This document shows, piece by piece, positions 8,913 to 55,674 of a stretch of DNA of 62,940 bases. The first letter of the stretch is position 1, and every line of letters begins with the position of its first letter. The notes under the pieces are model-generated. The model was not told the origin of the DNA. It saw only the letters and a program-made list of their open reading frames with translations, and did not search any database. The DNA is taken from contig NW_026783079.1 in assembly GCF_031769215.1 (NCBI RefSeq), positions 1 to 62,940 of the forward strand, written 5' to 3'. Source of the stretch: Ylistrum balloti. Its lineage: Eukaryota. Both the position numbers and the translations under genes were made by a program.

Positions 8913-9975
8913 ATGCAGATAGTGATTTTTAAATATTTGGTATTGAGTCTGTTTGCTCTATTTCCTCTATGGTTTGTACCAGGGGTAGGGCAAACAGATG
9001 GTCAGATAGATATAGAGCTTGGTAATGAGGATTTAGGTATCTTTGAAAAGTTTTTTTCGCCTGTTTTTCCAAATCACCCTAATGATGGACAACTGAGTGT
9101 TGCGTTTCGTATTGCTTATACACCAGACCAACTTGATCCAGCCTGGTTTCAGCCTCTTAAACGTTTTGTCTTTCTTTTGCGTGAGCCGGAGGCAGTTAAG
9201 TTAAGTTATGGTCTAGAACAAGATATTTTTACTCCCAGTTTTGCTGATACAGATAAAGAACACTTACAAGATAGACCATTTTCGGGGTTGCTTTTGTTAC
9301 AGTTTCGTGCCATTGCTAAGCAAACGTTATGCTATGAACAGCTAACCTGGATAGATCGGCTTAGTATTAATATTGGTCTTGTTGGACCAGCTTCTGGTGC
9401 CCAGGCGATTCAAAATGGTTTGCATCGTTTGGTAGGAATTCGTGAGCTTTCTTGGTCTCCCCAACTGCGTAATGAACCTATTTTTAATCTTAGTTATGAC
9501 AAAGGCCTGCGTTTTTTTGCTCCGAGAGCACAGTCGTTGGTTTAATCTTGAGTTATTTCCTGAGATTGGAATTGCTCTTGGAAATGGTTTTACCTATCTT
9601 CATGGAGCAGCTCATCTACGGGTAGGAGGCAATTTAGAGAGATCTTATGGGCCACCACGTACGAACCCATTATTGTCTGGTAGTAATTTTACACAGACAC
9701 ATCAATATCGTTCTTGGGATTTTTTTTATTGGAATATCTTTATTGGTTTTGATCAACGTTTGGTTTTGCGGAATATCTTTTTAGACGGTAATATACTACG
9801 GGCTAGTGCGCGCGTTTCTCGAAAATGGTGGATTTATGAATATCAATTGGGTCTTGAGCTCGGTTATGGTGCCTACCGTTTACGTCTGATGAATGTCTAT
9901 CGAGTACGTGAGTTTTTTACTCAGCCGTACCCTTCTCAGTATTTACGTGCAGCATTATCATTTGATTTTTTTTGA
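8913..9975 (+). pseudogene. Lipid A 3-O-deacylase LpxR family (DUF2219), split by a +1 frameshift in a T7 run (phase variation, decay or sequence error)
   Basis: YTPD, DRPFSG, GLVGPASGAQAIQNGLH and QLRNEP in ORF 8913-9545, then ALGN...YEYQLG...FDFF in ORF 9442-9975. The span is 1063 nt = 3n+1, with T7 at 9512-9518. Confidence 0.72.
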
Positions 9976-10106: not shown

Positions 10107-11399
10107 ATGTCTTTTTTTAAAGAACTTGTATTACATCCAAACCTATTGGCAGGCATTGATGCTATTGGGTATCGTGAACCAACACCAATCCAGCAAGAAA
10201 CTTTGCCAATTACGACCCAAGGGGGAGATGTTATTGGGCAAGCTCAGACTGGATCTGGTAAAACAGCTGCTTTTCTAATTGCGGCCCTGCAGCAAGTATT
10301 AGCCTATAAAAAACAGTCAACAATGAATTCTCAAGACCCTAGTGTCTTAATCATTGCACCGACAAGAGAGCTTGTCCAACAAATTTCTGAAAATGCTCAC
10401 GGTCTCGCTAAACGTTGTCAGCTAAAAGTGCATACTGTTTTAGGAGGTGTTGATTATCAGGCTCAGAAAGATGCTTTTCGTGATGGTGTTGACATTTTAA
10501 TCGGTACACCGGGTAGGTTAATCGATTATTACAAACAACGTGTTTATTCTTTAAAGCAACTCAAAATGTTGGTTATCGACGAGTGTGACCGTATGTTTGA
10601 TCTTGGTTTTATTGCTGATTTACGTTGGTTAATTCGTCGTATGCCTAAGATGACAGAACGGCAGAATCTCTTGTTTAGTGCAACGGTTGACTATCGTGTG
10701 AAGGAACTTGCCTGGGAGTACATGAATGATCCACCAGTTGTGGCCGTCGACCATAATCACACACCACCACAGCAAATTAAACAATATATTTATCATGTAG
10801 CCTTAGATGAGAAAATAGCTTTACTTATAGGGCAACTAAAAAAATGGTCATTGTCCAAAGAACCTATGCGTGCCATTGTTTTTACTAACAGACGTCAGGC
10901 TTGTTTACGTATTTCGGATTATTTAACGGCGAATGGTTTGGAGGCTTTGGCGCTATCTGGAGCCTTAAATCAAAAGCAACGATTTCGAGCACTAGAAGCA
11001 TTTAAACAGGCTGAATCGACTATTATTGTGGCTACTGATGTTGCTAGTCGCGGTTTACATATTGACAACATTACGCATGTGATTAATTGGGATGTTCCAG
11101 CTAATGCAAAAGACTATATTCACCGTATTGGTCGTACCGCACGTGCTGGTGCTCAGGGATTAGCTATTACATTGGCGAGTGAAGATACGGTCGAAAATTT
11201 ACCAAATGTCGAAGAAGTTTTGGGTTGTAAAATAGATGTTCTTTGGGCTGCTGATGATGATTTTGTTCCTAATGTTAGACGGCCTCCTCAGAAAACTGAA
11301 GCATCTACTTTAGCTAGACGGTCAAGATCAAAACAGCAATATGGTAAAAAATCAAGAGGCCGACATCCATCTAAAAAAAATAATGATCGAAAGCGTTGA
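10107..11399 (+). CDS. rhlB: DEAD-box RNA helicase, RhlB-like
   Basis: Q motif, AQTGSGKT, PTREL, DECD, SAT, HRIGRTAR. The RMFDLGFIADLRWLIRRMP segment is RhlB-like. Confidence 0.75.
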   Translation: MSFFKELVLHPNLLAGIDAIGYREPTPIQQETLPITTQGGDVIGQAQTGSGKTAAFLIAALQQVLAYKKQSTMNSQDPSVLIIAPTRELVQQISENAHGLAKRCQLKVHTVLGGVDYQAQKDAFRDGVDILIGTPGRLIDYYKQRVYSLKQLKMLVIDECDRMFDLGFIADLRWLIRRMPKMTERQNLLFSATVDYRVKELAWEYMNDPPVVAVDHNHTPPQQIKQYIYHVALDEKIALLIGQLKKWSLSKEPMRAIVFTNRRQACLRISDYLTANGLEALALSGALNQKQRFRALEAFKQAESTIIVATDVASRGLHIDNITHVINWDVPANAKDYIHRIGRTARAGAQGLAITLASEDTVENLPNVEEVLGCKIDVLWAADDDFVPNVRRPPQKTEASTLARRSRSKQQYGKKSRGRHPSKKNNDRKR

Positions 11400-11518
11400 A
11401 AAAAGAGAATCGTATAAGATTTATATATCAATATTGGTTAATATATGAAGTAATGTAGACTATTCTGTTTAAAAGATGTAAAATAATCAACCTATCTATA
11501 TAAATTAAGTCAAGTTCA

Positions 11519-11568
11519 CCCTGCTTGCTCCTATTTGATATTAGGGGCTAGATATTCCACAAGGAGGG
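11519..11568 (+). promoter_or_regulatory. S6:S18 ribosomal-protein autoregulatory leader (rpsF 5' UTR)
   Basis: CCCUGCUU (11519-26) pairs 7/8 with the SD-containing AAGGAGGG (11561-68). Inner hairpin GCUCCUA/UAGGGGC (11527-33/11542-48). CCA lies just before the SD strand. Confidence 0.72.
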
Positions 11569-11574
11569 ATCATT

Positions 11575-12045
11575 ATGCGTAAATACGAAACAATTTTGTT
11601 GCTAGACGACGCGCTTAGTCAGGCAGATATCGATACATTTATTGATGAGCTTAAAGGGTTTGTTAATAAACATGGGGCTCAATCTAGTGAATCTCAGCCC
11701 TGGGGCCGTAAAAAACTTGCTTATGAAATTAAGAAAAAGCAGTATGCCCATTATGTTTTCTTTCGGTTTACTTCACCTGGGCAAACACCTCATGAATTAG
11801 AGCAGCTTTTGCGTATTGAGAAACGTGTTTTACGCTTCCAGACATACCTAGATAGTGGTGAGATTGAAGAAGAAGCTGTTCATTTTAAAAACTATCAAAA
11901 ATTAGCTACTTATCTGACGGCACGTGGGAAGATCCGTCCCTGCCGGACGACACGGTTTAATGCGGCGCAGCAACGTTTACTTTCTCAACAAATAAAACGT
12001 GCACGAGTATTAGGTCTTTTACCATTTACAACCGTTGGTGTTTAA
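11575..12045 (+). CDS. rpsF-rpsR: Fused 30S ribosomal proteins bS6-bS18
   Basis: aa1-93 are S6 (MRKYET, WGRKKLAYEIKK, HYV, LRIEKRVLRF). aa102-152 are the S18 core (HFKNYQKL..YLTARGKI.P.R.T....QQR.L...IKRARVLGLLPF). One reading frame, with no internal stop or ATG. Confidence 0.9.
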   Translation: MRKYETILLLDDALSQADIDTFIDELKGFVNKHGAQSSESQPWGRKKLAYEIKKKQYAHYVFFRFTSPGQTPHELEQLLRIEKRVLRFQTYLDSGEIEEEAVHFKNYQKLATYLTARGKIRPCRTTRFNAAQQRLLSQQIKRARVLGLLPFTTVGV

Positions 12046-12059
12046 GAAAGGGGCGTGTC

Positions 12060-12632
12060 ATGAAAGTACTTCTTATCGAATCCATAGAACATCTAGGTTT
12101 ACCTGGAGATATCGTTGATGTTAAACCAGGTTATGCTCGTAATTATTTATTACCGCACCGAAAGGCATTAAAAGCTACAGAGCATAATGTTGTAGAACTT
12201 GAGCATAAGCGACGCATTGCAAATAATCGAAGAAAGCAACTACTTAATGATCTTCGTGTTCGTTGTGAGACTCTAACCTCAGTTACCGTTTCGTTTGTAG
12301 AGCGTGTTACTGATCAAGGTAAACTGTATGGTTCTGTTACATCTCGTCGTATTGCTGATCAATTAAGTAATCAATATGGAGATGTTCCTGTTTCCTGGGT
12401 TAAGCTTGAAGAGACCATTAAGACGCCTGGTAGTTATGTTGTTGAACTTCATTTAGCTCCAGAATTGATAACATCTATTACAGTTGAGGTCATTGCAGAA
12501 GACGAGCCGACATTAGCTCCAACTGAAATATCTGACTCTTCAGCTGATTTAGATGAACAACCTACAGATTCAGTTGATACATTGAATTCTGCTGAATCTG
12601 AAATAGCATCACTTGAATCGGAAGCTGAATAA
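12060..12632 (+). CDS. rplI: 50S ribosomal protein bL9 with acidic C-terminal tail
   Basis: MKVLLIE..LG..GDIVDVKPGYARNYLLP and GKLYGSVT. Follows rpsF-rpsR. Confidence 0.96.
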   Translation: MKVLLIESIEHLGLPGDIVDVKPGYARNYLLPHRKALKATEHNVVELEHKRRIANNRRKQLLNDLRVRCETLTSVTVSFVERVTDQGKLYGSVTSRRIADQLSNQYGDVPVSWVKLEETIKTPGSYVVELHLAPELITSITVEVIAEDEPTLAPTEISDSSADLDEQPTDSVDTLNSAESEIASLESEAE

Positions 12633-12658: not shown

Positions 12659-14504
12659 ATGTGTGGAATCGTTGGATATATTGGTACCCAATGTGCTACA
12701 GATATCCTTATAGATGGTTTAAAGAAGTTAGAGTATCGTGGTTATGATTCTGCAGGCATAGCTCTTCAAGAGTCTAAAACCCTTTCTATTTTTCGATGTA
12801 AAGGAAAAGTTCAAAATTTAGTACAGGAATTACCGGAGCCCAAACCCTCAGCGACTTCTGGTATTGGGCACACGCGTTGGGCGAACTCATGGTCGACCTA
12901 GTACAAAGAATGCCCATCCCCATCGTGTTAGAGATACTGTTGTTGTACATAATGGTATTATTGAAAACCATTTATCTTTACGTGAATCATTAGAATCAAT
13001 GTGTAGTCAGTTTCAGTCAGAAACTGATACCGAAATCTTTGCTCATCTCATTCAAAATGCTCTAGATAAAGCTACAGTTAATTCTGAGTGTGATTTTATT
13101 GCTGTTGTGCAAGAAGCTCTTCTACCTATTGAAGGTAATTATGCGTTAGGTATTCTCAATGTACAATACCCTGACCAGCTTCTGTTTATTCGTCAAGGTA
13201 GTCCTCTTATTATTGGTCTAGGAGATGATGCTTGTTTTGCTGCATCAGATATACCTGCAATTCTGAGTTATACACGCAGAATGCTAGTCCTTGAGGACGG
13301 TGATATTGCTCAATTAACTCGGAAAGGCGTTCTAGTCTATAATTCAAACGGTGACGAAGTTCAGCGTCCAATTAGTACTATTTCTTGGGATCCCATTCGG
13401 GCAGAGAAGGGGGGGTATCCTCACTTTATGCTTAAAGAGATTCATGAACAGCCCCGGGCTATTTCAGATACGCTTGCTGGTCGTCTTAGCTCAGAGCAGG
13501 GTCGTGTTTATTTTGAAACAGCATTTGTTCCAGACGATATCATCCTTAATATTGATCGAGTTTTGATTATTGCTTGTGGGACAAGTTTTCATGCTGGTCT
13601 GACATCTTGCTATGATTATGAACGTATTCTTGGTATTCCTACTTCTGCAGAGTTTGCCAGTGAATTTAGGTACCGTAATCCTATATTGAATGATAAAACA
13701 CTTGTTATTGCTATATCTCAAAGCGGAGAAACAGCTGATACACTGGCTGCTGTTGACCTTGCAAAACAGAAAGGCGCGACAGTTTTATCTGTATGTAATA
13801 TGATTGAATCAACTATTGTTCGTGCTAGTGATTATGTCATTTATACACATGCAGGACCAGAGATTAGTGTGGCTAGTACTAAAGCTTTTGTCACACAGTT
13901 AGTAAGCTTACAATTGATTCTGCTTTATATAGGAAAAAATCGTGGTATTCTTCGCAAAAAAGAATTACAGACGTTGACTCAAGATTTACTTCACCTTCCT
14001 ACGGTTGCCTCAAATTTATTGTCCTCTGAGCAGCAGATACAGCATATTGCTCGTAGGTATGCCTATGCTCAAAATATGCTATATCTCGGACGAGATATTC
14101 ATTATCCACTTGCTATGGAAGGTGCTCTGAAACTAAAAGAAATTAGTTATATTCATGCAGAGGCTTACCCTGCAGGTGAAATGAAGCATGGTCCAATTGC
14201 GCTTATAGATAAAGATGTACCTGTCTTTTTTATTATTCATGCTAGCTCTGTACGTGAAAAAGTTATCGCTAACATGGAGGAAATTAAAGCAAGAGATGGC
14301 AAAATTATTGCTTTAACTTTACCGCAAGATGAGGAGGTAAAAAGGGTTGCCGATCATGTAATAGAAGTCCCCAGTATAAGTCCCCATGTAGACTCTATTT
14401 TACTGTCTATACCATTACAGTTATTTGCTTATTATGTTGCTGTTCACCGAGGAACTGATGTGGATCAACCACGTAACCTTGCTAAGAGTGTTACGGTGGA
14501 ATAA
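12659..14504 (+). pseudogene. glmS: Glutamine-fructose-6-phosphate aminotransferase, split by a +1 frameshift at 12884-12885 (probably sequence error)
   Basis: MCGIVG, LEYRGYDSAG, GHTRWA then a shift to THGRPS..NAHPH, ending PRNLAKSVTVE. The span is 1846 nt = 3n+1. Confidence 0.92.
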
Positions 14505-39065: not shown

Positions 39066-40208
39066 TTAATATCCTTTTAGTGTTGCTAAGCGGTTTTTAT
39101 GCCAGGCAGCATCGCCAAATAGGGTAGCTGCTGCACGAGCCCGTTTAAAGTAAAACCCAATATCATATTCATCTGTCACACCAACACCACCATGCATTTG
39201 GATACCTTCACTGGTAATTCGTTCAAAGGTGTCAGTCATTTTTGCTTTTGCTAGAGAGGCGAAGAGTGCAAGATCTTGATTTTTATTTCCCGCTGCTGCA
39301 GCTGCTGTTAAAACCGCAGATCGTGCTAAGGATAGATCTACAAATAGGCGCGCAGCCCGATGTTGTAATGCCTGAAAGGCTCCAATTGGCTGGTCAAATT
39401 GCTGGCGTTCTTTTAAATAATCCAGTGTTAAATCAAAAGCTGCTTGTGCAGCCCCCAGCATCTCAGCCGATAGTGCAATCGTTGCGAGATCAAAAATAGG
39501 GTCAAGTAGCGTTGCTGCCTCATTTTCTGACCCTAAACGTGCGCTCTCTTTTACGATTATATTTGTACATTCGATGATGGCGGTATTGCGGCCATCAATT
39601 TGGTGCTGCCTGGTTACCTTTAGGCCCGTCTGATCTTTTGGGACAAGAAATAGTGTCAGACCATCGCGGTCTTGAGTCTGGCCACCTGTGCGAAATAACA
39701 TAATATAGGTATCACTTATATGGCCGTCTAAAACGTGTGTTTTACGGCCGTTTAGCGTGTAGGTATCCCCTTCACGTTTGGCAGTCGCCTCAATATGGTA
39801 GCGATTATAGTGACTTTCTTGTTCTTGGTGGGCAAGGGTTATGATCAGGTTGCCGGTAGCAAGTTTTGGCAGGAATTCTTGACACAGCGTTTTATTGCCA
39901 GCCATTTTTAAGAGTTCCGTTGCTAGAATAGTCGTTGATAAAAGGGGCTCTGGCATTAATTTACTACCAGTCGCTTCTAAGAGTAAGCAAACTTCAAAAA
40001 AACTTAAATCTGCGCCACCATAGGTTTCCGGAATTGCCAGTCCTAAAAAGCCTAACTCTGCTAATTGTTGCCAAAGTTTTGGGTCATAGCCTGGTAAACT
40101 GCGGTCGTCACGGTAACGTCGTAGCGCCTCAATATCTACTTGCTCTTGAACAATTTTGGTGATGGTTTCAACAAGTAATTTTTGTTCTGTTGTTAATATC
40201 GTGTTCAT
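39066..40208 (-). CDS. Acyl-CoA dehydrogenase (likely beta subunit of a heteromeric pair)
   Basis: WQQLAELG, YLKERQQFDQPIGAFQALQHR, QMHGGVGVTDEY. Confidence 0.88.
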   Translation of the reverse strand: MNTILTTEQKLLVETITKIVQEQVDIEALRRYRDDRSLPGYDPKLWQQLAELGFLGLAIPETYGGADLSFFEVCLLLEATGSKLMPEPLLSTTILATELLKMAGNKTLCQEFLPKLATGNLIITLAHQEQESHYNRYHIEATAKREGDTYTLNGRKTHVLDGHISDTYIMLFRTGGQTQDRDGLTLFLVPKDQTGLKVTRQHQIDGRNTAIIECTNIIVKESARLGSENEAATLLDPIFDLATIALSAEMLGAAQAAFDLTLDYLKERQQFDQPIGAFQALQHRAARLFVDLSLARSAVLTAAAAAGNKNQDLALFASLAKAKMTDTFERITSEGIQMHGGVGVTDEYDIGFYFKRARAAATLFGDAAWHKNRLATLKGY

Positions 40209-40215
40209 ATGACAT

Positions 40216-41412
40216 TTATACCGACGGTAACCCTAAAACACGTTTGGCAATAATATTAAGCTGAATTTCTGAACTGCCACCTTCAATTGTACTGGCGCGG
40301 CTGCGTAACCAATCTCGTGTTGTCGCCTGTTCTTCGTCTGTAAATCCAGGACCTTCCCAACCTAGTGCTTGTGGGCCTGCGATTCGTGTTGCTAGATCAA
40401 AACGACGTTGTTTGAGTTCGCTGCCACATAATTTTAAGATTGAGCTTTCAGGGCCTGGTGCGGCACCTGCTGCCAACGTTTGCTGAATACGCTCGGTGGT
40501 TAAACCGTAGCACATTTCATCAATAGCGTAGTTGACAATGTCGCAGCGCAAAAACGGATCTTTCAGTGGGCCTTGTGGCGTATTTTGGTAGGTACGGGTA
40601 GCTTCAACGAGCTTCATTTCAGTACCAGTAAGTTGGGTACCAATAGATTTGCCAATCGTTGTACGCTCATAGCCTAGTAAGGCTTTTGCAACTTGCCAAC
40701 CGCTGTTTACCTGACCAACTATATTGTTGACATTAGCTGTCGCGTTATCTAAGAAAACTTCGCAAAAAGGTGAACTACCGCTAATCAAGGGAATCGGGCG
40801 TACAGAGATAGCATCTTGCAACATGTCAACCAAGATAAAGGTGATACCTGCTTGTTTTTTAACGGTTTTATCTGTACGGGTTAAACAGAAAATCCAGTCA
40901 GATTTATCGGCGTGGGAGGTCCAAACTTTTTGCCCGTTGATGATGACCTTATCGCCATCAATCTCAGCTGTTGTTTGCAAGCCAGCTAGATCAGAACCAG
41001 CTCCTGGTTCTGAATAACCTTGACACCAGCGGGTTTCGCCAGAAACAATTTTTGGTAAATGTTCTTTTTTTTGGGTTTCTGTACCGTAATCAAGTAGGGT
41101 TGGTCCAATCATCACCAGGCCAAAGCCCACAAGCGGTGGTGGTACTTTAAGACGCTCTAATTCTTGTTCAAGAATCTCTGCTTCATCGTGTGTTAAACCG
41201 CCTCCACCATACATGGTTGGCCAAGTTGGTGCTGTAAAGCCTTTTTCGAGACTCACCTCAAACCAGCGTTTGACGTCCGCTTCAGGCTCTGGGTGCAAGC
41301 GGCCGCCCCAAAAGCCGTCAAAGCGGCCTTTGCGTGTGCCATAAAGAGACTGCGGCACATTCGCTTTTAGCCAAGCTTGCAGGTCTTTACGAAATAGATC
41401 TAAATTGGCCAT
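40216..41412 (-). CDS. Acyl-CoA dehydrogenase (likely catalytic alpha subunit)
   Basis: WCQGYSEPGAGSDLA, NGQKVWTS, TIEGGSSEIQLNIIAKRVLGLP. Confidence 0.9.
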   Translation of the reverse strand: MANLDLFRKDLQAWLKANVPQSLYGTRKGRFDGFWGGRLHPEPEADVKRWFEVSLEKGFTAPTWPTMYGGGGLTHDEAEILEQELERLKVPPPLVGFGLVMIGPTLLDYGTETQKKEHLPKIVSGETRWCQGYSEPGAGSDLAGLQTTAEIDGDKVIINGQKVWTSHADKSDWIFCLTRTDKTVKKQAGITFILVDMLQDAISVRPIPLISGSSPFCEVFLDNATANVNNIVGQVNSGWQVAKALLGYERTTIGKSIGTQLTGTEMKLVEATRTYQNTPQGPLKDPFLRCDIVNYAIDEMCYGLTTERIQQTLAAGAAPGPESSILKLCGSELKQRRFDLATRIAGPQALGWEGPGFTDEEQATTRDWLRSRASTIEGGSSEIQLNIIAKRVLGLPSV

Positions 41413-41421
41413 ATTTGGTGT

Positions 41422-42420
41422 TTAAGCAGGTGCTCTGTTAGACGTTGGAGCTGTCGAAGCTTCGGAATAAAACTGTTTATACCATTTGCGTAATTTCATA
41501 ACAGGGCCGTCGTCACCGCATAAAAGTGGCACATCACGGTAACATTTGTTTTCCCAAATTTCGATATCTTCTAGAAAACCTGTGGTTAAGTTATCAATAT
41601 ACCCCTTAGAAAAGCTTTCGGTCTGTTTTGGGTCAGTACCTTTTTTGAGCATGACACCAAAGCGTAAATCTAAGCTATTTGCGTCGACCATTGTATGGGC
41701 ATTGATTAAGCGGCTTTCTAAGAAACCATTCATCACAGAAATTTGAAAGCCAGGGCCGTAATACGTTGCTGTTAGGTCGAAATAATCCTTACCGCCACCA
41801 CGGGGGTAAGCAACCCCTTTGTTATATTGAATCGCTTTATGCTCATTAAAATCATTGGAAAATTCTTCAATAATTGTGCCATGTACAGGTGCAAAATGGG
41901 CAATATCAACAACATTTTCGACGATTTCACGAGAATGGGTCTTGATATGAATTTTACTATGTTCCCAGTAGGTCCATTCTTCGGATTCAGATTCTGGCAG
42001 TAGTGGAATTTCAAAATCAGGTGCCTTGCCTTCGGGGTCAAACCAAAGGAAGATAACACCATTTTTTTCTTGTAACAGCCAAGTTGTTGTCCAAGAGCCA
42101 CTTGCTGCTCGTTTTGGGATATCTTGGCAATAAGGTATTTCTGTACACTCGCCTTGTCCATTAAACCGCCAAGAATGAAATGGGCATTCTAGGGTGTCTT
42201 CAATTACTTTGCCTTTACCTAAGTCCATCCCTAAATGTGGGCAATAGGCATCAATGACATGAAGGTCTCCAGATTGACCGCGAAAACAAACCAGCCGATG
42301 GCCAAAATAGGTCATCGATTTGACGTCCCCAGGTTGATATTCATTGGAAAACCCAATTACAAACCAACCGCGAGGAAATCCCTCTATACGATCTTTACGT
42401 CGTTCTGTACGTTGTTCCAT
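41422..42420 (-). CDS. kshA: Rieske oxygenase, 3-ketosteroid 9-alpha-hydroxylase KshA-like
   Basis: FPRGWF, Rieske CPH..CPFH, mononuclear-iron ENVVDIAHFAPVH, DIEIWENK, DGPVMKLRKWYKQFY. Steroid-cluster context. Confidence 0.7.
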   Translation of the reverse strand: MEQRTERRKDRIEGFPRGWFVIGFSNEYQPGDVKSMTYFGHRLVCFRGQSGDLHVIDAYCPHLGMDLGKGKVIEDTLECPFHSWRFNGQGECTEIPYCQDIPKRAASGSWTTTWLLQEKNGVIFLWFDPEGKAPDFEIPLLPESESEEWTYWEHSKIHIKTHSREIVENVVDIAHFAPVHGTIIEEFSNDFNEHKAIQYNKGVAYPRGGGKDYFDLTATYYGPGFQISVMNGFLESRLINAHTMVDANSLDLRFGVMLKKGTDPKQTESFSKGYIDNLTTGFLEDIEIWENKCYRDVPLLCGDDGPVMKLRKWYKQFYSEASTAPTSNRAPA

Positions 42421-42427
42421 AATCGCG

Positions 42428-42622
42428 TTACGACTCTTCTAAACGGATTGCTGCCCGTGGGCAATTTGCAACAGCTGATTCAAGCTGTTCACGTAGGGAT
42501 TCATCGGGATTTTCATTTAGAACGGTTAACGTGTCGTCTTCTTCTACGCGAAAAATCTCGGGTGCGATTTGTTCGCAAATGGCATTTGCTTCACAGGAAT
42601 CATAATCTATGATAATTTTCAT
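42428..42622 (-). CDS. Small [3Fe-4S]-type ferredoxin
   Basis: CEANAIC...CP (CxxNxxC, with Asn at the second Cys position). Confidence 0.88.
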   Translation of the reverse strand: MKIIIDYDSCEANAICEQIAPEIFRVEEDDTLTVLNENPDESLREQLESAVANCPRAAIRLEES

Positions 42623-43257
42623 GCAGCCTCCTCACTAGTCTGTTGTGGGCGTAACGATAAACCATGACGTTCTTCTAAATGTGCAGCGATTTTGTTGGCT
42701 AACTCTTCTGCTGCTGGCACAAGTGCTGGTTCGATCATCGCATTGACCATCGGTCCCATCGGGCCGCCAGCTTCCATGGCCAATGTAAAGGTTAGCTCTG
42801 TGGCATTATCTTGAATTTCAGAAGCGTCAAGTTGTTTGCGTTCTGTTGTTTCATTAAACCGTTTAAATAACAAGCGAAATAACCAAATCATAAAACGTTT
42901 GATGAGGCCTAGGCGCTTTGGGGCTTTGTTTTGTTCTGATGATTCTGTTTGTGTTGGGGGGGCACCGTAAGGGTACATTGTGAACTCGCCATTACCCTCA
43001 AGAGGCTCGGAGACGCCTTTTAAGGTAAAAGTTACTTTTTCTGGGCCTTGCCACTCTGTAATGTGTACTGCAAACTCAATGGTGCGTTGTAAAATGCCCA
43101 CATCTCCTTTGAGTGTCCAGGTCGAATCGGTCTCTGATTGCACCTCATGGCTTTGGTAGCCGGTTACAAAGGGTGCCCAGTTATTCATATCCTGGACAAA
43201 ATCCCAGATTTTGTCGCGATCTAAGTTTAGAACGGTACTGTATGTTGCCGCAGGCAC
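42619..43257 (-). CDS. SRPBCC/CoxG-family ligand-binding protein
   Basis: IWDFVQDMNNWAPFVTGY. GTG start overlaps the upstream TAG (TAGTG). Confidence 0.75.
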   Translation of the reverse strand: MPAATYSTVLNLDRDKIWDFVQDMNNWAPFVTGYQSHEVQSETDSTWTLKGDVGILQRTIEFAVHITEWQGPEKVTFTLKGVSEPLEGNGEFTMYPYGAPPTQTESSEQNKAPKRLGLIKRFMIWLFRLLFKRFNETTERKQLDASEIQDNATELTFTLAMEAGGPMGPMVNAMIEPALVPAAEELANKIAAHLEERHGLSLRPQQTSEEAA

Positions 43258-44918
43258 TAGAGAATGCCACACATATGTTGTGCCGCAACGTAGCCCCACG
43301 TCATATTACGTAAGTTCGACAGGCCACTTTGGTAGCCAGCCCCGGTATCTAGAGGTGCTGCCGCATTACCACAGGCATACAGGCCTTCAATCCCATGACC
43401 ACGTACATGTTGTACTTGGCCAGTGGCTGTGGTTTTCAGACCAACACAGTTGACACCAACACCAACTGGAATCAGCTTAATACCGTAATAAGGTGCTTTA
43501 TTGAGTGGGCCCATATTGGGGTTAGGGCGATCACGGTCACCAATAAACTTGGCAGCCCAAGGATAGGTGCCACGACCAAAGTCTGGATCTGTTTCACCAT
43601 CAGCAAAGCTGTTAAAGCGTTCTAGCGTTTCAACAAAATTATCGGCATCAATCCCCAGTTTTTCTGCTAATTCCCGCGGCGTGTCGGCTTTGACAATCAT
43701 TTCATCTGGGATTTGCATACCGGGTAAAAAGGTGGCAAAGCTATATTTTTCGCGGTAATTGCTATCAAAAATAAGGTAGGGGGGGTAGTTGGTATGTTGT
43801 TGTTTGACCCCGTCCCAGCCATGGACTTTCGGTAAGTATTCACGGTAGAAGGATTCGTCACAGAACCGCTTGCCTTCATCGTTGACCCAAATGGCATGGG
43901 GGTAACCGCCTTCCCATGAAGCGCGGCATAGTGGGTGCCCATCGTGTTCTTCACCAGGGATGGTATAGCCAAAAAACATACCTAAGTTATAGCTTGGTAC
44001 GCCACCAAGGGATGCGCCAACTTCACCACCAAGGACAATGTTATCGCCATGTAGATGAGGCTGACACATCGATTTCCATTCTGGCAGTCCTTCAAATTGA
44101 ATCGCCATTTCTTCATTCCAGTCATAGCCACCCACACCAAGCAGTACACCTTTATTTGCTTTGACAAAAAAGTCATTGCCATCAGCAGCTTCGGCGCGTA
44201 CGCCAATGACGCGACTGCCTTCTGTAATGAGTTCTCGCACGGGAGTTTCGACAAACGCTTGTGCGTTTGTGCGGTCAATCAGCGCTGCTTTGACGAAATA
44301 GCCCATCATACCCGGGCCCATCCCCCGTTGATCCGCACCAATTTGTTTGCCCATATGAGCAAAATCCCATTTGGTAACACAGGAAACACTGCCCCATTCA
44401 AACAAGGTGTCATGGTTGATGCCGGGCGGCATATGTGGGGTTAAATAGGTCTTTTTTTGCCATTCTTTTAGGTCAGGGCCATTAAAGAGTTCAACTTCTA
44501 GGTAGCGGCCTTCTGCAAGGGTACCTGGTGCATGGGGGTAATGGTAATCGGGAAAGCCTTTGATGGTTTTCCAGGCAATACCGGCTTTTTCGCCTAAATA
44601 CTCTGCTGCTTCACGGCCTTTATCAAATAAAATACGTTGTAGGGCTTTGTTGGCATAACCGCCAGCTAAGAAATCTAAATAGGCAAAGGCTTCTGTTTCG
44701 TTATCTTCTGTGCCCTCGGCAAGCATTTTGTAATTGCAGGGGACAAAGACCTCACCACCAGAGTAGGCACACACACCGCCTAATTTGGGGGCTTTTTCTA
44801 AGATTGCCACCTTTAGACCATTGTCCTGGGCAACGATTGCTGCACTCATGGCTCCTAAACCGGAACCGGCAATGACAACATCGACTTCTAAATTCCACTG
44901 TGCGGGTGCTGTGGCCAT
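43257..44918 (-). CDS. FAD-dependent 3-ketosteroid dehydrogenase-like (KstD/delta4 family)
   Basis: IAGSGLGA, EKAPKLGG..AYSGG, PDYHYP, DPDFGRG, GLYACGN. Confidence 0.75.
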   Translation of the reverse strand: MATAPAQWNLEVDVVIAGSGLGAMSAAIVAQDNGLKVAILEKAPKLGGVCAYSGGEVFVPCNYKMLAEGTEDNETEAFAYLDFLAGGYANKALQRILFDKGREAAEYLGEKAGIAWKTIKGFPDYHYPHAPGTLAEGRYLEVELFNGPDLKEWQKKTYLTPHMPPGINHDTLFEWGSVSCVTKWDFAHMGKQIGADQRGMGPGMMGYFVKAALIDRTNAQAFVETPVRELITEGSRVIGVRAEAADGNDFFVKANKGVLLGVGGYDWNEEMAIQFEGLPEWKSMCQPHLHGDNIVLGGEVGASLGGVPSYNLGMFFGYTIPGEEHDGHPLCRASWEGGYPHAIWVNDEGKRFCDESFYREYLPKVHGWDGVKQQHTNYPPYLIFDSNYREKYSFATFLPGMQIPDEMIVKADTPRELAEKLGIDADNFVETLERFNSFADGETDPDFGRGTYPWAAKFIGDRDRPNPNMGPLNKAPYYGIKLIPVGVGVNCVGLKTTATGQVQHVRGHGIEGLYACGNAAAPLDTGAGYQSGLSNLRNMTWGYVAAQHMCGIL

Positions 44919-44960
44919 CGTATAGAACTCCTAAATTCGTCGTATTTAATAAGAAATTTC

Positions 44961-44989
44961 ATAATAGAACACGTTTCACTGCGCTGCAA
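44961..44989 (-). promoter_or_regulatory. Sigma70-like promoter of the leftward steroid operon
   Basis: Minus strand TTGCAG-N17-TATTAT. SD AGGAG at 44932-44928. Confidence 0.55.
44965..44978. promoter_or_regulatory. KstR-type operator, left
   Basis: TAGAACACGTTTCA matches TnnAACnnGTTnnA exactly and overlaps the spacer and -10 of the promoter above. Confidence 0.72.
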
Positions 44990-45114
44990 ATAATCTGGGA
45001 GTTTTTGATTTGATATGGGGGTGGGGATTTTGTTTAGAATGGTTATGTGGGGAGAGAGTTAAGGGGGGAATGGGAGGTAACTTTTGGGTTGTTAGAGCTC
45101 TTAAGGAGACAATA

Positions 45115-46638
45115 GTGAAATCTGTGCTTGATAATCTTGCTAAAACTATTGATAGGGCATCCACTGAAAGAGATATTGATGTATTAAATGATTCTATTTT
45201 AAAAATCGAGGAGCTTCTAAGTCGAGAATTATCTCCGTTTGAAAAAGCTCAGCTCTATTTCTTCAGTGCAAATTGTTATTCAATGAAGAGAATCATTAAT
45301 GGAGATGTCTATGGATGGGCCTGGGAAGATGAAAATTTAGAAAAAGAGATATCTTATCTCAGGTACTCCTTAGCGGAATGTAAGTCTATTCCGTTCAAAA
45401 AAGATGGATCTGATTTAAGATTTAGGGTCGAAACGAATTTAGCTAATGCCCTAAACCATGTCGGACGTTTTGTTGAAGCTCTTGAGTCTTGGGGAAATGT
45501 TCTAAAGGATTCTCCTGAATACGCAATGGCTGTCGGAAACAGAGGGCATTGCCTTTTTTGGTATGCCAAATACTTATATGATCCAGGGCATCAATCTATT
45601 TTTCTGAATGAAAGCTACCAACAGATAAAAAGTGCATTAGACATTGGTGTAGAAGAACATGCAAAAAATGGGATGTGTAACTTGCTAAATTACCTTAAGT
45701 CATTGAATAACTGGAATGAGTTCGAATTTTATCCTGAAGAGGTCTCAAGAGGTAGGTCGAAGCTTGAGCGTTCCTATCGCACCTGGTGCATTAAAAAAAG
45801 GTTATTTTTAAATCCGCTTAATGATATTTGGAAACATGATATTGTCGCGAACGATATACTTACTTTTCCCTCTATTATTACACCTATAGTGGATCCAGAT
45901 AGTAACAATATATTTCCAGAGGTCTATGGCATATACAATCAGCTCAAACAGGAATTTGTATCTGCCCGCTATATTATGTTTGAAGCAATAGAGGAGTCAG
46001 AAAGTAGATTACATTTTTCAGATAAACGAGTAAAGCTATACGATATGTTAGATTATCGAAAATATCGATTATGGATAGAAAAACTAAAAATGGCTTTTCT
46101 ATCAGCGTATGCAATTTTTGACAAGATAGCGTATCTAATTAACGAGCATTGGCAGCTGTCGGTCGATACCCAGAGAGTCCAGTTTAATACGATATGGTAC
46201 AAATCAGTTAATCGTGGAAAAGGACTTTCTAGTCACTTTTCTGATTATGATAACTGGCCTCTCAGAGGCCTTTTTTGGCTAAGTAAAGATCTATACTTTA
46301 AGAACAACGAGAATAGCCCTATCGAGCCGGATGCTCGTCTTCTTAATCATATAAGAAATCATATTGCTCATAAATATCTTTGTGTATACGATAGGGTTTG
46401 AGTATACGATAGGGATTTAGATTTTAAGTGCTCTAGACAAAAAGGTAAGAATCATTTGGCATTTCGAATTACTGATGACGAATTTAAGTCTCAGTCAATA
46501 AAACTATTGAAGCTAGTTCGTAGTGCGTTAATTTATTTGTCTTTGGCAGCCCATAGCAAATCATCAGAAGAAAATATTAGAGAAAGGCGGATAATTAGAA
46601 TGGATCTCTATGAAATTGAAGATTCATTTAGGCTGTAG
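45115..46638 (+). pseudogene. LA2681-like HEPN-domain protein with TPR-like N-terminus and an in-frame TGA at 46399-46401
   Basis: FLNPLND, NQLKQEFVSARY, FDKIA, NWPLRGLFWLSKDL, RNHIAH (RxxxxH). The C-terminal helix KLLKLVRSALIYLSL is in the same frame after the stop. GTG start has SD AAGGAG. Confidence 0.78.
46381..46416 (+). repeat. 18-bp imperfect tandem repeat containing the HEPN stop codon
   Basis: TGTGTATACGATAGGGTT / TGAGTATACGATAGGGAT (16/18 identical). Confidence 0.8.
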
Positions 46639-46759
46639 CTTTAATAACGGAAGAAAAAAAGGATTGTTATATATCTACCTCTTGAAAGTTGTTTTTTATC
46701 TTGCAAAATCTATTTAAAATTGACAAAATGTAAACAAGTCGAAAACATGTTGATTGTCT

Positions 46760-47266
46760 ATGAATTATAAAGTTGTCCTCATTACTGTACTGACGATGCT
46801 TCCGTCATTGGCACTGGCCAGTGATAAAAGTGATCAGACGATCTCATTTGAGCAACGAGATAGAGATAATATCGAGCAAGTTGCAACAGATGTATATGCG
46901 ATAGATAAGCGTCTCATTCGTTTAGAGCAACGTTTCGATGTAATAGACGAGCGTTTTACATTTGTTGATCACCGTTTTAAGGCAATTGATCATCGTTTTG
47001 ATGCGGTGAATCAGCGTATTACAGATCTCAAAGATTCAATGCAGCAGCAGTTTCGTGATATTCGTGCTCTGCTTTATGTGCTACTGGCCGGTATGTTTAC
47101 CTTGGTTGGGTTTATTCTTTGGGACCGTCGTACAACCCTTGCGCCTGTGCAACGATTGCAAAGAGACCATGACGAGCAACTAACAAGCGTGCGAAACGTA
47201 TTACTCGAATGGGCTGCGGATCAACCAAAGCTTGCAGCAACGCTGAAGCGTTTTAATATCTTGTAA
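46760..47266 (+). CDS. Exported coiled-coil protein with C-terminal TM anchor
   Basis: Signal peptide ..SLALA, heptad RFxxxD repeats, TM followed by WDRRT. Confidence 0.65.
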   Translation: MNYKVVLITVLTMLPSLALASDKSDQTISFEQRDRDNIEQVATDVYAIDKRLIRLEQRFDVIDERFTFVDHRFKAIDHRFDAVNQRITDLKDSMQQQFRDIRALLYVLLAGMFTLVGFILWDRRTTLAPVQRLQRDHDEQLTSVRNVLLEWAADQPKLAATLKRFNIL

Positions 47267-47421
47267 TCTTTTAAATAGTTAAGTCAAAAGATCAGTATGC
47301 TGCTAAAAATGCTGCTACTGATATGGTTCTTTTGCGCTATGGTTCTCCTCTATATTAATGCTATGTTTCTGCTACGTAGGTTAAGACATCTATGAATGCA
47401 ATGTACATAAAAAAATAGAAC

Positions 47422-47435
47422 TAGAACGTGTTTCA
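47422..47435. promoter_or_regulatory. KstR-type operator, right
   Basis: TAGAACGTGTTTCA matches TnnAACnnGTTnnA, 61 bp before the hsaA start. An extra TAGAAC half-site lies at 47416-47421. Confidence 0.72.
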
Positions 47436-47496
47436 TATTTGGGATATTCTAAATACATAAAGAATTTGACAAATAAACATAATGAGGTCTGCAAAG

Positions 47497-48696
47497 ATGG
47501 CTGTAGCTGCACACACGTTAAATATTCCAACTCATGATGAACTTGTTTCCCGTGCACGAGATCTGGCGCCAAAGCTAAAAGAGCGGGCAGAGGCCGCAGA
47601 GGCTGCACGCTGTGTGCCTGAGCAAACGGTCGCAGAAATGCAAGAAGCTGGTTTTTTTCAGGTGCTACAGCCCAAAAAATGGGGCGGGTATGAGTGTGAA
47701 CCACGTACTTTTTTTGATATCCAAATGGAACTGGCGCGGGCCTGTCCATCAACAGCCTGGATTTATGGTGTTATTGGTATTCATCAATGGCAGATGGCTT
47801 TATTTCCTGAAGAGACACAACAAGAGGTTTGGGGAGAGGATCCTCGTGTACTGATTTCTTCCTCCTATATGCCTGTTGGTAAGGTCGAGCATACCGATGG
47901 TGGTGTGATTTTAAGTGGTCGTTGGGGGTTTTCTAGTGGCTGTGATCATTGTCAGTGGGTGTTTGTTGGTGGTTTTATTCCACCTAAAGATGGTGAAGGC
48001 TATCCTGATATGGTGACTTTTTTGGTACCACGTAGCGATTATGACTTTGATGATGACTGGCATGTCTCTGGTTTAAAAGCGACAGGTAGTAAGACGGTTA
48101 TTGTTGATAAAAAGTTTGTGCCTTGGCGTCGAATTCATAAATTTAGTGATGGATTTAAACAAGATAGCCCCGGTCATGCGGTTAATGATGCACCGCTATT
48201 TCGTCTCCCTTTTGGGCAAATTTTTGTTCGGGCGGTTTCTACAGGGACTATTGGGATGTTACAAGGTGCGTTAGATACCTACATCGAGGTGCAAAAGGAC
48301 CGTGTCCAACGTGGTAATGGTGAAGCCGTCTCTCAGCAAGCAAATGCGCAACAGGCGGTTGCTCATGCTGCAGCAACAATTGATATGTTAAAGCTCATAC
48401 TCTACCGCAGTTTTGATGAAATGATGGATTATGTGAGGCGCGGTGAAAAGATACCTGTTGAGCGTCGTGTTCATTTTCGTTATCAGTCCGCGTTGGTTGT
48501 TGAGTCTTGCTTAGAGGCTGCGACGAAATTATTAAACGAAAGTGGCGGTTCTGGGATCTTTTTAACCAATCCAATCAATAGCTATTTTCAAGATATACGT
48601 GCCGCGCGCGGACATTATGCCAATAATATGGATAAGCCTGGTAAAAACTTAGGTAGTGTCTTAATGGGCTTAAAAAATACAGATTTCTTTATTTAA
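47497..48696 (+). CDS. hsaA: Flavin-dependent monooxygenase oxygenase, HsaA-like
   Basis: AGFFQVLQPKKWGGYE, ACPSTAWIYGV, GRWGFSSGCDH, WHVSGLKATGS, FQDIRAARGH. Confidence 0.82.
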   Translation: MAVAAHTLNIPTHDELVSRARDLAPKLKERAEAAEAARCVPEQTVAEMQEAGFFQVLQPKKWGGYECEPRTFFDIQMELARACPSTAWIYGVIGIHQWQMALFPEETQQEVWGEDPRVLISSSYMPVGKVEHTDGGVILSGRWGFSSGCDHCQWVFVGGFIPPKDGEGYPDMVTFLVPRSDYDFDDDWHVSGLKATGSKTVIVDKKFVPWRRIHKFSDGFKQDSPGHAVNDAPLFRLPFGQIFVRAVSTGTIGMLQGALDTYIEVQKDRVQRGNGEAVSQQANAQQAVAHAAATIDMLKLILYRSFDEMMDYVRRGEKIPVERRVHFRYQSALVVESCLEAATKLLNESGGSGIFLTNPINSYFQDIRAARGHYANNMDKPGKNLGSVLMGLKNTDFFI

Positions 48697-48719
48697 ACGT
48701 AATCTAAAGGCCTCTAATA

Positions 48720-49631
48720 ATGACTGAAATTAAACAACTAGGCTACCTTGGTTTTGAGGTTGCCGATCTGAAAGCCTGGGAGCATTTTACAACCGACGTT
48801 CTTGGGTTAGGGCAAAGCCAACACTTTGCAAATGGTGGCTTTGCGCTACGTCTAGACGAATATCAACAACGTTTTATCATTCAGCCAGGTCAGGCAGATG
48901 ATCTTGTTTGTGTTGGCTTAGAAGTTGAAAATAAGGAAGCACTGACAGCGGTAATTTCTCGTGTACAGGCTGCGGGAATTGCTGTAGGCGAGGGCGACAG
49001 CAAACTGGTCGAGCAACGCCAAGTTGAGGCATTAACAACCTTTAAAGAGCCTGGTGGTGTGCAGTTTGAGGTATATTATGGGCCGCAAATGGCGGCGGAG
49101 CCATTTCAGTCGCAGGTGGTGGCTCATGGTTTTAAAGCTGGTGCCCTTGGTCTCGGTCATTTTGTTTTACGGGCTGGTGATTTAGAAGCATCACTAAAGT
49201 TTGTGACGGATGTTTTAGGATTTCGCTTAAGTGATCGTATTATTTGTGATATTGGTGGTTATCATGTCAATATTGCTTTTACGCACTGTAATCCACGGCA
49301 TCATTCGCTGGCCCTTGGAGAGAAATTGCCTAAACATATCCATCATTTTATGCTTGAAGTCAATGATATTGATGATGTCGGCCAGTGTTGGGACCGTGTT
49401 GTCAATGAAGGAATCACGGTTTGGAATGCTATTGGCCGGCATCCCAATGATCGTATGCTATCTTTTTATGCAGAAACCCCGTCAGGCTTTCAATTTGAAT
49501 TTGGTTGGGGGGGACGTGAAATTTTAGATGATGATACTTGGGATACTTATGTTTATGATCGTATTAGCGATTGGGGGCATGAACATCCAGCTCAAATGTT
49601 TAAGAAGATGTTTAAAAAACAGAAATCGTAG
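48720..49631 (+). CDS. hsaC: Extradiol (meta-cleavage) dioxygenase, HsaC/BphC-like
   Basis: LGYLGFE, LGLGHFVL, CNPRHHSLA, HHFMLEV, GRHPNDRMLSFY..TPSGFQFEFG. Confidence 0.8.
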   Translation: MTEIKQLGYLGFEVADLKAWEHFTTDVLGLGQSQHFANGGFALRLDEYQQRFIIQPGQADDLVCVGLEVENKEALTAVISRVQAAGIAVGEGDSKLVEQRQVEALTTFKEPGGVQFEVYYGPQMAAEPFQSQVVAHGFKAGALGLGHFVLRAGDLEASLKFVTDVLGFRLSDRIICDIGGYHVNIAFTHCNPRHHSLALGEKLPKHIHHFMLEVNDIDDVGQCWDRVVNEGITVWNAIGRHPNDRMLSFYAETPSGFQFEFGWGGREILDDDTWDTYVYDRISDWGHEHPAQMFKKMFKKQKS

Positions 49632-49675
49632 CAGCGCATTACCAACAAATAGACTAGGAAAATTAGAGACAAACA

Positions 49676-50515
49676 ATGACTGTAGTAGCCGCAGTGCCAG
49701 AAGGCAAATACGTTGATATTTTTGACGGTCACAAAATCCATTACCACGAAGCCGGTGAGGGCTTTCCTGTTATTTTTATTCATGGTAGTGGGCCTGGAGC
49801 CAGTGGTTGGAGTAACTTTAAAGGCAATTATGAAACCATTGCAAATTTAGCTAACTGTCGTTGCTTTGTGCCTGATTTGCTCGGGTATGGCTATTCTTCG
49901 ATGCCAGAAGAAGCGACCTTTACCTACGACGATTTAAAAAACGGTATTCAAGAATTTGCGAAGCAACTAGGGCTTAAGGAATATGCACTCGTTGGCAACT
50001 CGATGGGCGGCGCAATTGCGATTACCTTAGCACTAGAATGTCCTGAGCAGGTCAAGCAGTTAATTTTAATGGCACCTGGCGGCTTAGAAGCTAAAGAAGT
50101 TTATATGGAGATGAAAGGTATACGTACAATGATTCGGGCCATGTATGCGCCAGAAGGTATTACCCGTGAGTCGATGCGTAAAGTTTTTTCTCTACAATTG
50201 CATGACGCCAGTTTGATCACCGATGACATTATCGAAGAGCGGTTTCAGATTGCAGAGCAGCAGCCAAGAGGTATGTTCGAGAAAGTTATTGTTCCCAACC
50301 AAGCAGGTCAGCTTGCTGAGTTACAAATGCCTATTTTAGGGTTTTGGGGCGTAGATGATCAATTTTGTCCTGTTAGTGGTGCGATGATTGTTGCCAAAGA
50401 AGCTAGCCAAACGAAAATGACGATGCTAACAGAATGTGGACACTGGGTGATGGTGGAACATGAAGCGTACTTTAATCAGCAATGCGCAGATTTTGTGCGG
50501 CAAGAGACGGTGTAA
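49676..50515 (+). CDS. hsaD: Meta-cleavage product hydrolase, HsaD/BphD-like
   Basis: HGSGPGASGWSNF, GNSMGG, CGHWVMVE. Confidence 0.8.
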   Translation: MTVVAAVPEGKYVDIFDGHKIHYHEAGEGFPVIFIHGSGPGASGWSNFKGNYETIANLANCRCFVPDLLGYGYSSMPEEATFTYDDLKNGIQEFAKQLGLKEYALVGNSMGGAIAITLALECPEQVKQLILMAPGGLEAKEVYMEMKGIRTMIRAMYAPEGITRESMRKVFSLQLHDASLITDDIIEERFQIAEQQPRGMFEKVIVPNQAGQLAELQMPILGFWGVDDQFCPVSGAMIVAKEASQTKMTMLTECGHWVMVEHEAYFNQQCADFVRQETV

Positions 50516-50520
50516 AGACG

Positions 50521-51324
50521 ATGGCCCTAACAGAAGATAAAATTCGTTTTTATGGAGATGCCTTGTTTCAGGCATTACAAACACGCACAACCCTAAAGCC
50601 GCTGACCTCACAAGATAACTTAACCGTCGATGATGCCTATGCCATCTCTAAACATATGATTGCTTGTCGTGTCGAGGCCGGCGAGCGCATTATTGGAAAA
50701 AAAATTGGTGTTACCAGTGCACCTGTGCAAGATATGCTGAATGTTCGTACACCGGACTTTGGGTTTTTAACCGATGCAATGCACTATGAGCAAGGTCAAG
50801 AGATGCCCATTAGCAGTAACCTGATTCAGCCCCGCGCTGAGGGTGAATTGGCGTTTCGTTTGGCTAAAGATTTAACGGGTCCGGGTATTACGGCAGAAGA
50901 TGTACTGGCTGCTACCGATAGTGTCATGCCTTGTTTTGAAGTTGTTGATTCACGCATTGATAATTGGCAAATCAAGTATGAGGATACCGTTGCTGATAAT
51001 GCTTCTTCGGGGTTATACATTGTCGGAGAGCCTGTTTCTCCGCGTGGCATTGATTTGGCGACAGCTGAGATGGTTGTTGAAAAAAACGGCCAATTTCTAA
51101 GCCGTGGTAGTGGGGTTGAGGCTTTAACTGGAGAGCCAAAACTGGGCACACCTGTTAATTGTGTTGCTTGGCTTGCAAATACACTTGGTCATTATGGTAT
51201 TGAGTTACAGGCAGGAGATGTTATTCTTTCTGGTTCACTTGTTCCCCTAGAGCCTGTTGTATCCGGAGACCATATGCAGGTCACTATTGCTGGAGTTGGT
51301 ACATTGGGTGTACAGTTTGTCTGA
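50521..51324 (+). CDS. hsaE: 2-hydroxy-dienoate hydratase (HsaE/MhpD)
   Basis: GKKIGVTS, PDFGFLTD, QPRAEGE, EVVDSRI, VADNAS, ILSGSLVP. Confidence 0.82.
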   Translation: MALTEDKIRFYGDALFQALQTRTTLKPLTSQDNLTVDDAYAISKHMIACRVEAGERIIGKKIGVTSAPVQDMLNVRTPDFGFLTDAMHYEQGQEMPISSNLIQPRAEGELAFRLAKDLTGPGITAEDVLAATDSVMPCFEVVDSRIDNWQIKYEDTVADNASSGLYIVGEPVSPRGIDLATAEMVVEKNGQFLSRGSGVEALTGEPKLGTPVNCVAWLANTLGHYGIELQAGDVILSGSLVPLEPVVSGDHMQVTIAGVGTLGVQFV

Positions 51325-51481
51325 AAATATGAAGTATGTATATAGAGGCCTGATGAGTTGCTTTACTGCTACGCAGCCTTCGAGGATGTTTATTATATTG
51401 ATCTCGGAATTGCTTTGTAGTAAGACAAATAATCACCCTTATTTTTGTAGATGAATGAAAGTTGATTAAAGGTATGTTTTT

Positions 51482-52360: not shown

Positions 52361-52433
52361 AGACTGTAAAACCAAGATATAAATTCAGATTATTATTTGG
52401 AATTGTTGAAAAAATATAAAAAGTGAGACTGAT

Positions 52434-53465: not shown

Positions 53466-53478
53466 ACGGTAGTTATCT

Positions 53479-55194: not shown

Positions 55195-55197
55195 ATA

Positions 55198-55674
55198 ATG
55201 ACGATATCTGATTTAATTCAAGCACCGCTACAGTTTGATTTGTCCTGCACACTTGCAGCCACCCCAGATGAGGTTTTTACATTTATTACAGATTTTGAGG
55301 GAATGCCAGGTTGGATGCCACTGATGAAGCGTGTTGAGGTTGATAATACAAAGGCACAGGCACCTGGTGAAGTTGGAGCTGTACGGGTCATTTATCCACC
55401 AGTTGGTAGCGCTACCTATGAAGAAGTACGCGTTTTTGAACGCCCAAATCTACTGGCCTATAGTGCTAGCGATGACTCTTTAATGGGGATGTATACAAAC
55501 CATATCGGCGTTTTAACTTGTGAAGCTACAGGGGAAGAGCATACGCTATTTTCCTGGCGTACCTACGCTGATCCCGGTAAAAATGTGATTATGCGCTTTT
55601 TTGGGCGTTTGGTGTTTGGCTATGTTTTTCGTCATAGCTTTAAGAAATTAAAGCAGCGTTTTCCGGTTTCCTGA
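55198..55674 (+). CDS. SRPBCC (polyketide cyclase/START-like) protein
   Basis: PDEVFTFITD...PGW, GAVRVI. Confidence 0.75.
   Translation: MTISDLIQAPLQFDLSCTLAATPDEVFTFITDFEGMPGWMPLMKRVEVDNTKAQAPGEVGAVRVIYPPVGSATYEEVRVFERPNLLAYSASDDSLMGMYTNHIGVLTCEATGEEHTLFSWRTYADPGKNVIMRFFGRLVFGYVFRHSFKKLKQRFPVS

Follow-up and report, generated by a model that had tools for sequence, protein, structure and literature searches.

Ribosomal proteins bS6 and bS18 dimerize before binding 16S rRNA, and it is the dimer, and neither protein alone, that acts as the feedback repressor of rpsF. In the contig analyzed here, which was assembled together with the genome of Ylistrum balloti (NW_026783079.1, 62,940 nucleotides, hereafter, the window), a single open reading frame (ORF) appears to encode both proteins. 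This raises the question whether the two obligate partners are indeed produced as one chain in some bacteria, or the ORF is a dispensable copy, a precursor of two separate proteins, or a product of faulty assembly.

The ORF (11575..12045, plus strand) starts with ATG, contains 156 codons with no internal stops, and ends with TAA. It encodes a full bS6 domain followed by an acidic linker of 9 residues and then by the bS18 core (aa 102-152; Table 1). Both domains are recognized well above the curated cut-offs: Pfam Ribosomal_S6 covers aa 3-90 (E = 7.9e-25, 87.3 bits, cut-off 27) and Ribosomal_S18 covers aa 100-149 (E = 1.5e-14, 54.3 bits, cut-off 21), and the NCBIfam equivalogs TIGR00166 (S6) and TIGR00165 (S18) score 78.4 and 47 bits, against cut-offs of 42.9 and 38.75, respectively. 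The first-pass annotation, which described a single-chain S6-linker-S18 ORF, thus was accurate. A tblastn search detected no second S6 or S18 in the window.

Table 1. Features of the fused gene, its leader and the adjacent region (window coordinates)
Feature	Position	Strand	Evidence or remarks
Sigma-70-like promoter candidate (TAGACT, 17 nt, TAAAAT)	11456..11484	+	Consensus scan, 9/12 matches; upstream of leader
RpsF_leader-like 5' UTR hairpin	11517..11574	+	Near-invariant in six fusion lineages
P1 outer helix	11519-11526 with 11561-11568	+	3' strand holds the Shine-Dalgarno sequence AAGGAGGG
P2 inner helix	11527-11531 with 11544-11548	+	Pairing in leader hairpin
3' internal loop	11549-11560	+	Invariant CC at 11557-11558
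bS6 domain of fused gene (aa 1-92)	11575..11850	+	Pfam PF01250, NCBIfam TIGR00166, AlphaFold2/Foldseek
Acidic linker DSGEIEEEA (aa 93-101)	11851..11877	+	Length kept, sequence variable across six lineages
bS18 core (aa 102-156) and TAA stop	11878..12045	+	Pfam PF01084, NCBIfam TIGR00165
rplI (L9)	12060..12632	+	Pfam L9 N- and C-terminal domains; 14 nt downstream of fusion

The S18 part of the fusion aligns with residues 19-71 of E. coli S18 and residues 32-83 of T. thermophilus S18 in the solved structures. Because the alignment begins only at these positions, the N-terminal arm of S18 is absent from the fused protein, which bears out the proposed loss of this arm together with its CxxC motif; the basic arm typical of free S18 is missing in all six lineages that share the junction of the window gene (see below). 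At the position where the S18 of a member of Calditrichia, which contains CxxC, reads TSGTCAKHQ, the fused domain reads TTRFNAAQQ. The claim that the fused protein is zinc-independent is true but trivial, given that many S18 proteins, including that of E. coli, lack the Cys motif; we dismissed zinc loss as a notable trait because the presence of this motif in S18 is lineage-specific.

A fused ORF could result from an assembly or gene-calling artifact, that is, a deletion or mis-join that merged separate rpsF and rpsR genes in this particular contig. The contig does contain single-base frameshifts, in glmS (12884/12885) and in LpxR (T7 homopolymer, 9512-9518), and the contigs from public sequencing runs do not cover the segment 11540-12030 that includes the junction. 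In the best of these runs, only about 10% of the sampled words are present, and the corresponding contigs span 10800-11535 and 12030-12290, leaving the fused gene uncovered. These contigs are short and low-depth, are 95-100% identical to the respective parts of the window, and come from macroalgae and marine metagenome runs and from one organism-labelled run; given this level of identity, close strains of this bacterium occur in marine samples that are unconnected with the host assembly. The in-frame loss of roughly 200 nt, however, cannot come from single-base indels, and the same in-frame junction, with a linker of 9-11 aa, recurs in six diverged lineages that were sampled and assembled independently. 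Specifically, when 5.8 billion protein clusters were searched by shared words, a 157-aa two-domain ortholog, 56% identical over the full length, was retrieved on an independent ENA metagenome contig, and four further full-length relatives (156-159 aa, E below 1e-30) came from an exhaustive HMMER search, which covered 1.84 billion representatives. Altogether, at least six diverged lineages, 36-58% identical and sampled in independent metagenomes, have the same junction, on contigs produced by different studies with different assemblers (ENA, JGI, Logan, NCBI). An artifact is extremely unlikely.

Same-length fusions in related genomes, which had been put forward as a check, thus do exist (156-159 aa), including one in a metagenome-assembled genome (MAG) with the same synteny, that of 'Candidatus Dadabacteria bacterium' (GCA_003695505.1, contig RFIY01000260.1; locus L089, 3815-4288), where the fused protein consists of 157 aa and is 58% identical to that of the window. 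This MAG shares with the window the junction, the leader, and the neighborhood (PHP, DEAD helicase, fusion, L9, GlmS, PcrA). In contrast to the window, it represents a separate species-level lineage, in which the fusion is separated from the DEAD helicase by a Polyketide_cyc2 gene and GlmS is intact. The window gene order (DEAD helicase, fusion, L9, GlmS, PcrA) is found also in loci L082-L084, with the PHP-domain protein on L089, and the window PcrA is 60% identical to that of the MAG. Candidatus Dadabacteria is classified as a class of Thermodesulfobacteriota in the NCBI taxonomy, and the next-best matches of the window S6 domain are in Desulfobacterales, consistent with such placement. Among the matches listed for GTDB species representatives, there were only unfused rpsF loci, with 44% identity or less. 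We consider it very likely that the window carries a genuine, functional rpsF-rpsR fusion of a Dadabacteria-like bacterium, the contig of which was assembled with the host genome; the product would presumably be incorporated into the ribosome.

The pattern of sequence conservation points to selection on the fused gene. Across eight family members from the six lineages, the mean pairwise identity is 44% for the S6 part, 26% for the linker and 60% for the S18 part; although variable in sequence, the linker is acidic and 9-11 aa long in all six lineages. The two closest sequenced genes, those of L001 and L089, differ by 64.5 synonymous and 18.5 non-synonymous changes (dN/dS 0.05), and in another lineage, the three loci L086, L087 and L088 differ only synonymously. 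Judging from these substitutions, the fused gene is under purifying selection; the fusion is a conserved, selected feature that is typical of the Dadabacteria-like clade. Furthermore, K141 and R144 of the fused S18 part, the counterparts of K60 and R63 of E. coli S18, are invariant across 33 aligned fusion proteins. In E. coli, K60 and R63 form hydrogen bonds with C719/C720 of 16S rRNA and are required for leader binding (PMC4647458).

The AlphaFold2 model of the fused protein, computed with the alignment of the 33 fusions as input, is compact (mean pLDDT 93.0, pTM 0.83, pLDDT of about 87 for the linker) and consists of the S6 beta-alpha-beta-beta-alpha-beta fold followed by the three S18 helices; the ESM Atlas model has a pTM of 0.80. 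In Foldseek searches, the model matched the S6 chains of many ribosomes, with target-normalized TM scores of 0.8-0.92. No PDB chain containing both domains was found by sequence or by fold; these searches yielded only separate S6 and S18 chains. Compared with the canonical bS6:bS18 heterodimer (PDB 1G1X, 1FJG, 4YBB), the fusion retains both folds, the residues that contact C719/C720 of 16S rRNA (E. coli K60, R63), and the aromatic-basic pair at the S6 interface (Y23/K24 in E. coli, F104/K105 in the fusion). The differences are that the canonical S6 and S18 are two chains, whereas the window protein is one polypeptide, and that the N-terminal arm of canonical S18, which comprises about 18 residues by E. 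coli numbering, and the long acidic tail of S6 are replaced by the 9-aa acidic linker.

A genuine fused gene could still be an extra or decaying paralog, with the ribosome supplied by separate rpsF and rpsR genes located elsewhere. Some bacteria carry S18 paralogs, for example, pairs of Zn-dependent and Zn-independent forms, and only 63 kb of the genome are visible, so that such a copy could lie beyond the window. A decaying or superfluous gene, however, would not be expected to show a dN/dS of 0.05 and invariant rRNA-contact residues, a strong Shine-Dalgarno sequence and an RpsF_leader-like hairpin ahead of it, and a location at the canonical site, before rplI, in all relatives. In addition, in a search of 5.8 billion clusters for stand-alone proteins of 34-107 aa sharing three 5-residue words with the fused S18 domain, none was found, which is weak evidence against a separate S18. 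We therefore regard the paralog explanation as unlikely.

Even if the fused gene is the source of both proteins, the mature ribosome could hold two of them, should the linker be cleaved after synthesis or S18 be produced by internal initiation. Within the protein, the linker shows the lowest conservation and the greatest exposure, but it contains no conserved cleavage motif, is only 5 aa long in some fusions, and is modeled with confidence by AlphaFold2. As for internal initiation, the ORF contains no in-frame ATG, GTG or TTG downstream of aa 79, and no start codon is conserved at the junctions of the relatives. Production of two separate proteins from this gene thus is very improbable.

The 175-nt region upstream of the fused gene ends in a hairpin that is near-invariant across the six fusion loci while the proteins themselves are only about half identical. 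Rfam searches yielded nothing on the whole window or on the UTR, and the RpsF_leader model RF02893 gave no match up to E 10 on 11380-11640; as a control, the region upstream of E. coli rpsF scored 110 bits for RF02893, with the same layout and very similar strands. In E. coli, RpsF_leader (Rfam RF02893) is the element to which S6:S18 binds to repress the translation of rpsF (PMC4647458). We then relied on a covariance model, R1, for which the six fusion loci were the sole input, with unfused rpsF loci from GTDB serving as controls. In 17 other genomes, R1 matched sequences that extend up to the start codon of an unfused rpsF (E = 5e-5 to 0.07), and the E. coli RpsF_leader is matched weakly (15.3 bits, E = 0.1-0.2) and exactly in register. 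In a 23-sequence leader alignment, which was fitted to the model, 93.8% of the cells are paired, compared to 41-64% for slid controls; in the same fitted alignment, 8 pairs show compensatory changes, and none of 500 shuffles reaches the observed values.

Like RF02893, the window hairpin is located directly upstream of the start codon, sequesters the Shine-Dalgarno sequence in its outer helix, and presents CC in the 3' internal loop; the inner helix, GCUCC/GGGGC (5-6 bp), resembles GCCUCC/GGAGGC of E. coli. Unlike in RF02893, to which the hairpin gives no match even at permissive E-values, the apical part is a mere 12-nt loop. We read the hairpin as a diverged RpsF_leader and, given this reading, the fused protein probably represses its own translation, such that feedback control probably has been retained, with a single chain in place of the heterodimer that is the effector in E. 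coli. The most divergent member of the family (P0124, 159 aa; L090, 476-955) lacks the conserved leader motif upstream, and accordingly, feedback control might have been lost or replaced in that lineage.

A likely ancestral arrangement is seen in a relative from Calditrichia, where an 18-nt spacer separates rpsF (146 aa, with a long acidic tail) from rpsR (75 aa, with an arm containing CxxC), and rplI comes next. The ancestor of the fused gene would have been such an adjacent rpsF-rpsR pair from which, most likely, an in-frame deletion removed the codons of the acidic C-terminal tail of S6, the stop codon, the short spacer, and the codons of the basic N-terminal arm of S18. The product of such a deletion would consist of the S6 fold, about 9 acidic residues and the S18 core, and the acidic linker would be a remnant of the S6 tail. 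The parts that the fusion lacks, the S18 arm and the acidic tail of S6, form the lining of the platform pocket that surrounds the anti-Shine-Dalgarno helix in the ribosome. Functionally, the single chain would be a ready-made S6:S18 heterodimer that should bind the central domain of 16S rRNA (h22-h23a, next to S15) without a separate dimerization step. The fusion would also enforce a fixed 1:1 stoichiometry of the two proteins, which may be beneficial. The leader hairpin, by pairing with the Shine-Dalgarno sequence and displaying a CC loop that mimics C719/C720 of 16S rRNA, would allow surplus fused protein to repress translation not only of its own gene but, probably, also of the coupled rplI.

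Contrary to the rarity implied by the first-pass annotation, S6-S18 fusions are less unusual than they seemed: they recur in several lineages and already have been annotated automatically. Among the 150 best database representatives, both domains were detected in 48, the linker length ranging from 5 to 154 residues, although a few high-GC entries in this set look like frameshift artifacts; three such high-GC 'fusions' (P0131, P0147, P0163), with Arg/Ala-rich linkers that resemble products of frameshift or read-through, were not counted as real. The remaining fusions are well represented. The 169-aa protein P0272 (family P0126/P0272, 168-169 aa) is encoded on 20 contigs, two of these over 50 kb, beside L9 and L19. 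The P0166 cluster (207-211 aa) is represented on dozens of contigs of up to 295 kb and is labelled Gemmatimonadota/Longimicrobiales at NCBI (HIF39402.1) and 'ribosomal protein S18/ribosomal protein S6' in IMG. In the ESM Atlas, at least four clusters of 55-90 members contain both Pfam families, one of these under the name 'Multifunctional fusion protein'. The 169-aa fusion on these 20 contigs, which come from several samples, belongs to a family distinct from that of the window, has a linker of 24-26 aa, and lies in an operon with L9 and L19 (L091/L092, 10001-11373); upstream of this gene, there is a similar hairpin that pairs with the Shine-Dalgarno sequence and carries a CCC loop, as judged by eye only.

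Like the window gene, the other public fusion families encode S6 followed by S18, are represented by many independent contigs and usually precede rplI; unlike the window protein, they have much longer linkers (24-60+ aa), and some retain the N-terminal arm of S18. These families probably originated in independent fusion events. In a tree of the S6 domain (91 columns), the fused state requires 14 changes, with at least 2 forced by well-supported branches, and the window protein groups exclusively with P0002 and P0121-P0123, all of which are fused. This tree, inferred from 91 columns, suggests several origins of fusion overall and a single one for the window clade. The initial suggestion that the fusion marks a lineage is supported, in that the junction is conserved in six diverged relatives, and the fusion could serve as a simple sequence marker of the respective lineages; nevertheless, it is not exclusive to the window lineage, given the recurrence of S6-S18 fusions in others.

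Full-text literature searches, which included a paper on marine Dadabacteria, found no description of an S6-S18 fusion, although such fusions are already in public databases under automatically assigned names. At NCBI, the fused S6-S18 proteins in the MAG records MDO8494431.1 and HIF39402.1 bear the name of just one of their two components, 'S6' or 'S18'. Such single-domain naming makes the fusions easy to overlook and may distort marker-gene counts. This should be a warning to annotators and developers of marker-gene tools: where S18 or S6 is called 'missing' in such a MAG, the gap may be an artifact of how a fusion was named.

We lean, if only slightly, towards a broader interpretation, in which the fused chain, devoid of the S18 arm and the S6 tail, is the only form of bS6 and bS18 in the Dadabacteria-like clade and is regulated via an RpsF_leader, with the same solution reached independently in at least three bacterial lineages. 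If so, these bacteria would be a natural proof that covalently joined S6:S18 functions as a single unit in autoregulation as well as in the assembly of the 30S subunit. The retention of the single chain in an uncultured Dadabacteria-like class and, independently, in Gemmatimonadota and others implies that the covalent form is viable and selectable. Given that fusion of adjacent genes for interacting partners is an unsurprising event, the value of the finding is moderate. In practical terms, the fused protein is a ready-made reagent for assembly and leader-binding studies that would make co-expression unnecessary.

A DEAD-box helicase gene is located upstream in the window, and rplI is the downstream neighbor of the fusion in all relatives; no terminator-like site was detected between the fused gene and rplI, which probably are co-transcribed. 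The promoter candidate upstream of the leader (Table 1) is weak evidence because it comes from a consensus scan only and the region holds fewer such sites than its shuffles. The absence of ssb/priB, to which attention had been drawn, is correct for this locus, where rplI follows at 12060, but is not notable: the order rpsF-rpsR-rplI without ssb is ordinary, given that unfused relatives show it as well.

Further away from the fused gene, two genes are broken. A single additional A at 12884/12885 divides the window glmS (12659-14504) into two ORFs: the window reads GCGAACT where the relatives read GCG ACT, and the GlmS orthologs of L082 and L089 are intact (614 aa). The split reflects either a sequencing indel or a recent pseudogene. 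The gene for LpxR, an outer-membrane lipid A deacylase (8913-9975), likewise consists of two ORFs, which match positions 37-179 and 180-322 of the Pfam profile; the location of the break at the T7 homopolymer suggests a homopolymer-length error in the assembly. With at least these two single-base frameshifts, the base-level quality of the contig is imperfect.

The distal part of the window (39066-58289) contains a steroid-catabolism-like gene cluster, which is unusual for a Dadabacteria-like genome. It encodes a KshA-type Rieske oxygenase, two KstD-like flavoproteins and a BphC/HsaC-like dioxygenase, along with an acetaldehyde dehydrogenase and an HMGL-like aldolase, several acyl-CoA dehydrogenases, and a thiolase-like protein. 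The two halves of this cluster flank a gene (45010-46401) for a protein of 463 aa that contains an LA2681-like HEPN domain (E = 1.9e-54).
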